From Saccostrea cucullata (lineage: Eukaryota), in the NCBI RefSeq assembly GCF_032062105.1, contig NW_026929962.1:372001-436000 (forward strand): a stretch of 64,000 nucleotides of DNA, in the 5' to 3' direction. The position numbers and the translations under genes were made by a program. Positions 9,974 through 11,954 of the stretch are shown one piece after another (position 1 is the stretch's first letter; every line of letters begins with the position of its first letter). The notes beneath the pieces were generated by a model that was not told where the DNA came from, made no database searches, and saw only the letters and a program-made list of their open reading frames with translations.

Positions 9974-11954
9974 TCAATTTCCATGATGAAAAGACCACTT
10001 CTGCAAATCTTGATACAGGCATTCTCCAGGACTTGCAGTATTACTGAAATCTCTGTGTCCCTTCAGAATGAAATCAGTTCGTATGTTGCCTTCTTCCACA
10101 CCCCTTCGAATCAGATCTTTAGCAGCTTTAAGTGCTCTCTGATTTGGAAGACGTTCATCAAAGTTTCCAATGAAGCAAATACCTGATAAAAAGGAAGATA
10201 TTGGAAATTTATGTTTATTTCAGTCAATAAGTGAGATATTTCCAAGTACAAATTAAGTTGTGTTTTTTTTTAGGAAAGATTTTTAAAAATCGTTTGATTG
10301 CAATAAATATCAAAAGCTATAGTTATAAAAAGGAATGGAGAGACCTATGCGTAATTTTTGTATTAAAGAATACGAAATATGTATGCAAGGTCTATAGAAA
10401 CAATATACCTATGGTATCTTTGTTAATGTATTACATACCTATGGTATCTTTGTACTACATACCTATGCCATCTTTGTTAACATTTTACATACCTATGCCA
10501 TCTTTCTTAATGTATTACATACCTATGGTATATTTGTTAATGTATAACATAGCTATGCCATCTTTGTTAATATATAACATAGCTATGCCATCTTTGTTAA
10601 TGTATTACATACCTATGCCATCTTTGTTAATGTATTACATACCTATGGTACCTTTGTTAATGTATAACATACATATAGTATCTTTATTATTAATATATTA
10701 CATACCTATGCTTTCTTCGTTAATGTATTACATACCTATGGTATCTTTGTTATAAACGTATTACATACCTATAAATGGTATCTTTGTTAACGTATTACAT
10801 ACCTATGGTATATTTGTTAACGTATTACACGCCTATGGTATATTTGTTAACGTATTACATACCTATGAATGATATCTTTGTTACTGTATTCAAACCTATG
10901 CCATCTCTGTTTATGTATTACATACCTATGTTATTTTTGTTAAGTATTACATACCTATTGTATTTTTGTAACGTATTACATACCTATGCTATCTTTATTT
11001 AGTCCTTTGGTGTGAGCCCCTTCCTTACCCCATCCACGACCCTCATATACATTCCCATCCTCTCCAATCAAGAAATTGTATCCAATATCAGACCATCCTA
11101 AAAAAAAAAGTCGAACTTGATGATTATTTCTCTCAGAATTATTTTTGAGTATTTGAATGATTTTTATTTAGTGAAGGAATGAATCTGTCTACACACCTCT
11201 GTTATAAATATGGTAGGTCTGGTATGAACGTACTTCTTCTGCACATTGTTGTTCTGTGAATGCGTTGATGTTTGGACCACTGTGTGATATAATGACGTAC
11301 CTTGGAATGTGTTGTAAATTATCTACCTTTCCCCCTGGTTGTGTTGCTCCCCATTCACTGCGACTTATAATTCTGCCGATTAATGGCTCTAAAAATTATG
11401 ACATATATATGAAAAATTATTCAAAAGGGTATTAAATAAAAAGTTGGGTGGATAAATAGCTCATGTTTTTCATTTATCCTTTTTATTAGAAAATGTACAA
11501 CAACCTGAACTGTCGACGTCTTTCAAATGTTCTCTGCAATAAAACAAACAATAAATACGATAAATTCTCTTCATTTTAAGACCTTTTCACAATATGCATC
11601 ACGTAAACATCAAATTTCTTTTGTTTTCATAGAATAAAATACCCTAGTAGATTACCTTAATTCATTAATTTTTTTCTGAGCCTCTTCGATGTATTCGATC
11701 GCTCTTTGATCACATTTACCGAAATGTTTTAAAAGTTCATCATATTTTCCAGGTGCCAAATGTCCTTTTGCCTCCAGAGTGTTAAAATCTTCCACCACGT
11801 CACCTTTTGGATACGGAGCTCCTGTGATGCGTCCAATAAATAACCTCCACCGATCAAGTCCACCGTCATATTTGATAAAATCTAAAAGTTTATCTAGTAA
11901 TTCTGTATGCACTTCCCGTATGGAATTGTTTGTGGTAATAATATTCTTCGTCAT
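9974..11954 (-). CDS. PGRP-2: DED-like domain plus non-catalytic PGRP domain, 280 aa
   Basis: Exons 11954-11656 (DED-like), 11533-11505 (29-bp micro-exon, [10 protein letters not shown]), 11388-11197 (IISRSEWGA...RYVIISHS...[12 protein letters not shown]), 11097-10984 ([38 protein letters not shown]) and 10182-9974 ([25 protein letters not shown]...[29 protein letters not shown]). Total 843 nt, all GT-AG, frame intact. Confidence 0.92.
10404..11000 (-). repeat. ~30-bp splice-donor minisatellite in the last intron of PGRP-2
   Basis: About 19-20 copies of the same unit as 1-905, abutting the exon donor at 10984/10983. Confidence 0.95.

Follow-up and report, generated by a model that had tools for sequence, protein, structure and literature searches.

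A divergent death effector domain joined to a predicted non-catalytic peptidoglycan recognition protein domain in Saccostrea oysters

Amphioxus peptidoglycan recognition proteins (PGRPs) carry varied extra domains, possibly including a death fold. Most PGRPs described from molluscs are short and of the amidase type (PMC5877582), no mollusc has been found to carry a RHIM-motif PGRP (PMC9835746), and how PGRPs connect to downstream pathways in lophotrochozoans is still to be established (PMC13453010). For invertebrate NLRs and RLRs fused to a death effector domain (DED), direct triggering of caspases has been proposed (PMC2575513, PMC8998645, PMC8662601). No DED-PGRP was found in the literature searched, in which subscription journals had little coverage. 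A gene of this architecture lies in a 64,000-nucleotide stretch of the Saccostrea cucullata genome (NCBI RefSeq assembly GCF_032062105.1, contig NW_026929962.1, positions 372,001 to 436,000; hereafter the window). In this farmed oyster genus, its small soluble product would connect peptidoglycan to death-fold signalling by a direct route that is open to experiment. Elsewhere, the window holds a single-ORF ankyrin-repeat gene on the plus strand that by inspection looks like a FEM-1 homologue (44927-46855), and a run of N (51767-51910).

The DED-PGRP gene has five coding exons on the minus strand (11954-11656, 11533-11505, 11388-11197, 11097-10984 and 10182-9974) that together comprise 843 nt, or 280 codons plus stop. 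As an earlier note on this DNA had proposed, the reading frame is intact: all introns are GT-AG, their phases are 2, 1, 1 and 1, internal stops are lacking, and the S. cucullata RefSeq protein P0035 (280 aa) is 100% identical to exons 1, 3, 4 and 5, the four compared. RefSeq names this protein 'peptidoglycan recognition protein 1-like' and leaves its N-terminal domain unannotated. The first coding exon (11656..11989) consists of a 35-nt leader, the ATG at 11954 and residues 1-100, with the divergent DED at about residues 12-98; this ATG is the first in-frame start downstream of an in-frame stop, both within exon 1. A 29-nt linker micro-exon (11505..11533) leads from phase 2 to phase 1 and into PGRP exons A (11197..11388), B (10984..11097) and C (9974..10182), the last of which ends in a stop at 9976-9974. 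An AATAAA polyadenylation signal is predicted at 9895..9900 on the same strand.

Upstream, reads from three RNA runs have loose ends at 11990 that match window positions 13949-13969 with one mismatch and reveal a 5' untranslated exon (13948..14030, minus strand), whose 3' end at 13948 abuts a GT donor and whose 5' end is unmapped. This exon shows 81% conservation against S. echinata. An 18-codon upstream ORF begins at an ATG in the untranslated exon (13970-13948 plus 11989-11957, minus strand) and ends 2 nt before the main ATG, while a second, out-of-frame ATG sits 16 nt upstream of the main one. Translational damping of DED-PGRP by these upstream ATGs is possible.

Transcript evidence comes from a relative about 95% identical to S. 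cucullata. Joints 11656/11533 and 11505/11388 are present in all four RNA runs, drawn from four studies, with 23 and 19 raw junction reads, respectively, in run X24. Coverage is confined to exons, and single contigs span exon 1 into exon 4; the exon 4-5 joint is taken from the RefSeq model and the S. echinata orthologue. Exon 1 is thus joined to the PGRP exons in a congener, not in S. cucullata itself; transcripts that never make this joint, which the earlier note would have taken as a refutation, are not what the RNA shows, and the proposal that a DED is spliced in frame to a PGRP domain is borne out. A gene-prediction artefact is ruled out by the RNA joints, the orthologue and dN/dS. The absence of a signal peptide or transmembrane segment was likewise upheld, the best 19-residue hydropathy in exon 1 being 0.16. 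The relative also has a second PGRP transcript that bears a DED but differs in its linker (run X1, record 3); it represents another paralogue or allele. Sequence searches of the S. cucullata spliced model were run exon by exon, whole-protein searches used the S. echinata orthologue P0001 as query, and P0035 entered the alignments, local comparisons and tree.

The N-terminal domain is recognisable by structure rather than by sequence. Exon 1 has no Pfam match and no significant sequence match in the PDB, and a length-limited homologue search with exon 1 alone as query recovered nothing. Six DEDs ranked first among structural matches to a single-sequence model of the exon. A model built from a 25-row alignment reached a pLDDT of 89.9, and in a structural search of 48,161 chains its best 11 matches were all DEDs (Z 9.7-12.0), led by PEA-15 (Z 12.0, rmsd 2.0 over 87 residues) and including the caspase-8 DEDs (Z 11.8 and 11.4), the FADD DED (Z 11.0, rmsd 2.1 over 84 residues) and vFLIPs (Z 9.7-11.3). 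Pyrin domains (Z at most 9.1), death domains (Z at most 7.4) and CARD folds all scored below the DEDs. In Foldseek, the best eight rows were caspase-8 and cFLIP DEDs with weak E-values, and sequence identity between the domain and solved DEDs is low, at 6-15%. Among family relatives, 12 of 25 give weak Pfam DED matches (best 2e-6), and the family profile finds cFLIP DED2 and caspase-8 DED2 as its best matches in the PDB. A SAM domain, hinted at by weak Vts1 matches (E ~0.6), was ruled out by the fold searches.

As modelled, exon 1 adopts a DED fold with five helices and a loop where helix 3 would be. The E/D-RxDL charge triad is not present in the exon. Asp82-Ile86 (D-Q-R-A-I; 11697..11711, minus strand) occupies the RxDL position, where the family consensus is D-x-R-A; the register is uncertain by one residue, and RxDL is missing in either. 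Leu38-Phe39 (11838..11843, minus strand) aligns to the helix-2 hydrophobic patch (F114/L115 of cFLIP DED2) in a weak profile alignment (E 0.076), and this patch mediates DED-DED contacts (PMC4558505). The DED assignment made earlier from sequence patterns therefore stands by fold, since the DED is the closest death-fold subfamily, but not by signature: the PF01335 cut-off is not reached, RxDL is absent and the helices number five, not six.

Membership of the C-terminal half in the PGRP family is supported by the Amidase_2 match, which falls in exon B, and by the S. echinata orthologue, which matches a solved PGRP at E 5.6e-46. In PGRP-LB, His42, His152 and Cys160 are conserved only in catalytic PGRPs, a C160S substitution loses zinc, and R92 is the DAP-specificity residue (PMC8124813). 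In the oyster domain, Ser144 (11287-11285) replaces the first zinc-binding His and Ser262 (10033-10031) the zinc-binding Cys, while Tyr180 (PGRP-LB Y78) and His254 are retained. An amidase reading was rejected on this loss of zinc-ligand residues. In exon 4, 36 residues align one-to-one with PGRP-LB 73-108 and place Arg194 at R92. By these residues the domain is of receptor type (non-amidase, DAP-type), which goes beyond what the earlier note had shown. With two zinc ligands lost, Arg194 kept and a signal or membrane segment lacking, the prediction is a soluble protein that binds DAP-type peptidoglycan and leaves it uncleaved. No RHIM was detected at the locus, and no hydrophobic segment lies N-terminal to the PGRP domain.

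The same fusion, in the same tandem layout, is carried by S. echinata (P0001, XP_061173305.1). Comparing the two species by a simple counting method over 63-85 codons each gives a dN/dS of 0.26 in the DED exon against 0.23-0.24 in the PGRP exons; on these counts the DED exon is under purifying selection like the PGRP exons. In a search of 1.84 billion cluster representatives and a second search limited by region, together of limited reach, the DED-PGRP joint was found in Saccostrea only, which limits the generality of the finding, and a DED is absent from all other PGRPs retrieved. The nearest PGRP in the tree, with moderate support (94/76), is the non-catalytic, signal-less HEPN_DZIP3-PGRP of Ostrea edulis (P0070), itself a second unusual oyster PGRP fusion.

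A tandem paralogue on the minus strand (874..5304, with its last exon at G000:C12099:371603-371806, just beyond the window) encodes a non-catalytic PGRP whose DED has collapsed to helix 1 plus linker. The collapse is found in both Saccostrea species, with the same arrangement in S. echinata. This DED-collapsed copy could compete as a non-signalling binder. Its RefSeq model has a hydrophobic leader (hydropathy 1.34) that is missing from the S. echinata copy, and contigs resembling it occur in the relative's RNA at similar depth. A second assembly copy of the DED-PGRP gene (L028:7790-8160, on G000:C548) differs at dS 0.05-0.15 and is an allele or a recent duplicate; a G-to-T change at its last micro-exon base creates a stop at the joint, which would leave a DED-only product or a null and could be an assembly error. 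With the DED collapsed in the tandem paralogue and a stop interrupting the second assembly copy, the DED-PGRP form may be dispensable. Intron 4 contains a 30-bp minisatellite (10405..10996, minus strand) built from the end of exon 4 and its donor site. The repeat occurs in both paralogues (window 10405-10996 and 8-904), possibly with a 5' splice site in each unit.

The DED of the fusion belongs to a divergent family with about 40 genomic matches, largely distinct from the canonical PF01335 matches, among which it does not appear anywhere in the genome. Its sister group (99/99 support) consists of three loci, L003, L004 and L005 (on C8906, C16785 and C22227), at which the DED exon recurs together with a micro-exon of 32 nt running from phase 2 to phase 1, but which have no downstream exon in common; shared similarity stops about 300 nt downstream. 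In annotation these nearest paralogues are short proteins made of a DED alone, no 3' partner was found for them within about 9 kb, and they are either DED-only genes or mobile cassettes. The shared DED exon and micro-exon, followed by no common exon, suggest a cassette that shuffling brought in front of a PGRP exon of phase 1.

Other members lie near signalling genes, as read from coordinates only. On C2340 and C10101, same-strand caspase exons lie 2-9 kb downstream of divergent DED-like exons, and a divergent DED exon lies upstream of a TIR exon on C12842. The intervals G000:C2340:9647-12942 and C10101:10298-20368 are candidate caspases with an unrecognised DED prodomain, and the order divergent DED, helical exon, TIR_2 exon recurs in G000:C12842:1031-4128 (L006) and, in another sample, L031:1206-3014. 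In Crassostrea virginica, P0024/P0025 (LOC111115885) have two divergent DED-like domains in tandem, a layout like that of short cFLIP. P0003 and P0008 were rejected as family members; both are chance matches that the family profile does not match. The divergent family, below the Pfam cut-off, seems to have been shuffled onto caspases, TIR proteins and one PGRP.

Canonical components are also apparent from coordinates only: a FADD-like gene with DED and DD on C22775, tandem-DED caspase genes on C13036, C22873 and C7636, and a RHIM exon followed by a death-domain exon at G000:C2547:143368-144199, apparently a RIPK1- or IMD-like gene. With a RHIM-DD gene apparently in the genome, the fusion would sidestep such an adaptor and not stand in for a missing one. 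Because DEDs of the same type lie upstream of caspase and TIR exons, and death folds generally prefer their own subtype, those genes are as plausible as partners as FADD/caspase-8. A caspase or TIR protein with the same divergent DED type is tentatively, and slightly, favoured as the partner; canonical FADD/caspase-8, the pair put forward in the earlier note, is a somewhat weaker candidate. Caspase-8 homologues of bivalves are located in the cytoplasm, and NF-kB is activated by one of them (PMC7836458).

On balance, the product is probably a receptor for peptidoglycan in the cytosol, with DED assembly as its means of signalling, a reading in which binding, clustering, location and partner are all deduced from sequence and models. 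The PGRP domain would bind, but not cleave, DAP-type peptidoglycan or fragments of it and would cluster on the ligand in the manner of PGRP-LE, in keeping with a model of ligand-driven receptor multimerisation (PMC9496462). Brought together in this way, the DEDs would seed an assembly, through DED-DED contacts, with an effector that has a DED of its own, and would switch on caspases, NF-kB or both, with the DED substituting for the cRHIM-IMD step of insects. More speculatively, a DED filament nucleated by clustering might activate a dedicated oyster caspase whose own DED is of this divergent type, in an inflammasome-like unit in which NLR, RHIM and IMD have no part. Were this so, it would be the first PGRP to signal through a folded death domain, and a bivalve DED network hidden from Pfam would come into view.

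A caveat to the receptor reading is that a single DED can inhibit. The fusion might instead be a ligand-gated brake whose DED caps or sequesters FADD/caspase DED filaments, as PEA-15 or short cFLIP does, damping death or inflammation in commensal-exposed tissues. PEA-15 is the top structural match, cFLIP DED2 the best profile match and the nearest paralogues are annotated as short, DED-only proteins; moreover, inhibitory insect PGRPs exist in PGRP-LF and rPGRP-LC (PMC9496462). The Z-scores of the PEA-15, caspase-8 and FADD DEDs are, however, tied within 1, and known fusions of a sensor to a death fold generally activate; a brake is judged unlikely. Somewhat less likely again is a DED that serves only self-association or targeting, lending avidity on intracellular bacteria or routing them to autophagy or the phagosome without recruiting FADD or caspases. 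The divergent surface without RxDL would fit such a role, as would closest DED relatives that are neither caspases nor adaptors, and PGRP-LE has a role in autophagy (PMC3856074), yet the same-type DEDs upstream of caspase and TIR exons point to a signalling network.

PGLYRP1 counts against the receptor reading from another side, since the active-site pattern of the oyster domain is that of both PGRP-LCx and PGLYRP1, and the latter is a secreted effector. If the protein were an agglutinin or antibacterial PGRP comparable to PGLYRP1 or CgPGRP-S1S and released by a non-classical route, its N-terminal domain would be a passenger of exon shuffling with little function. Non-catalytic PGRPs can act as extracellular effectors, and the tandem copy has lost its DED; against this, purifying selection on the DED equals that on the PGRP domain and no signal peptide is present, which leaves a released effector the most improbable of these alternatives.

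As in PGRP-LE and PGRP-LC, receptors of the Drosophila IMD pathway, a non-catalytic PGRP domain with the DAP-specific Arg is placed C-terminal to a signalling module, and as in PGRP-LE the oyster fusion has no signal peptide or membrane segment. The N-terminal modules differ: that of the oyster protein is, as modelled, a folded DED, whereas those of PGRP-LE and PGRP-LC are a cRHIM amyloid motif. The oyster PGRP domain groups with oyster PGRPs and not with insect LC/LE, so the receptor state would have arisen separately. Invertebrate DED-NACHT NLRs and DED-RLRs similarly have a DED grafted onto a cytosolic sensor, but the oyster sensor is a PGRP and lacks an NTPase or helicase, which leaves the ligand or PGRP-PGRP contacts as the necessary source of clustering. 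The earlier description of the protein as NLR-like is accordingly apt as an analogy but does not extend to composition, as NACHT/NB-ARC is absent and the 280 aa hold only DED, linker and PGRP. With PEA-15, FADD, caspase-8 and cFLIP the oyster DED shares its fold and may share, going by the weak alignment, the helix-2 hydrophobic pair; unlike them, it falls under the Pfam cut-off, has no RxDL, is modelled with a loop for helix 3 and belongs to a divergent DED-like family of bivalves. Finally, the protein resembles PGRP fusions of molluscs and other invertebrates (with lysozyme, SH3b or PAN, and the O. edulis HEPN_DZIP3-PGRP) in joining a PGRP to an accessory domain, and is set apart by its death fold from the molluscan PGRPs reported in the literature consulted.
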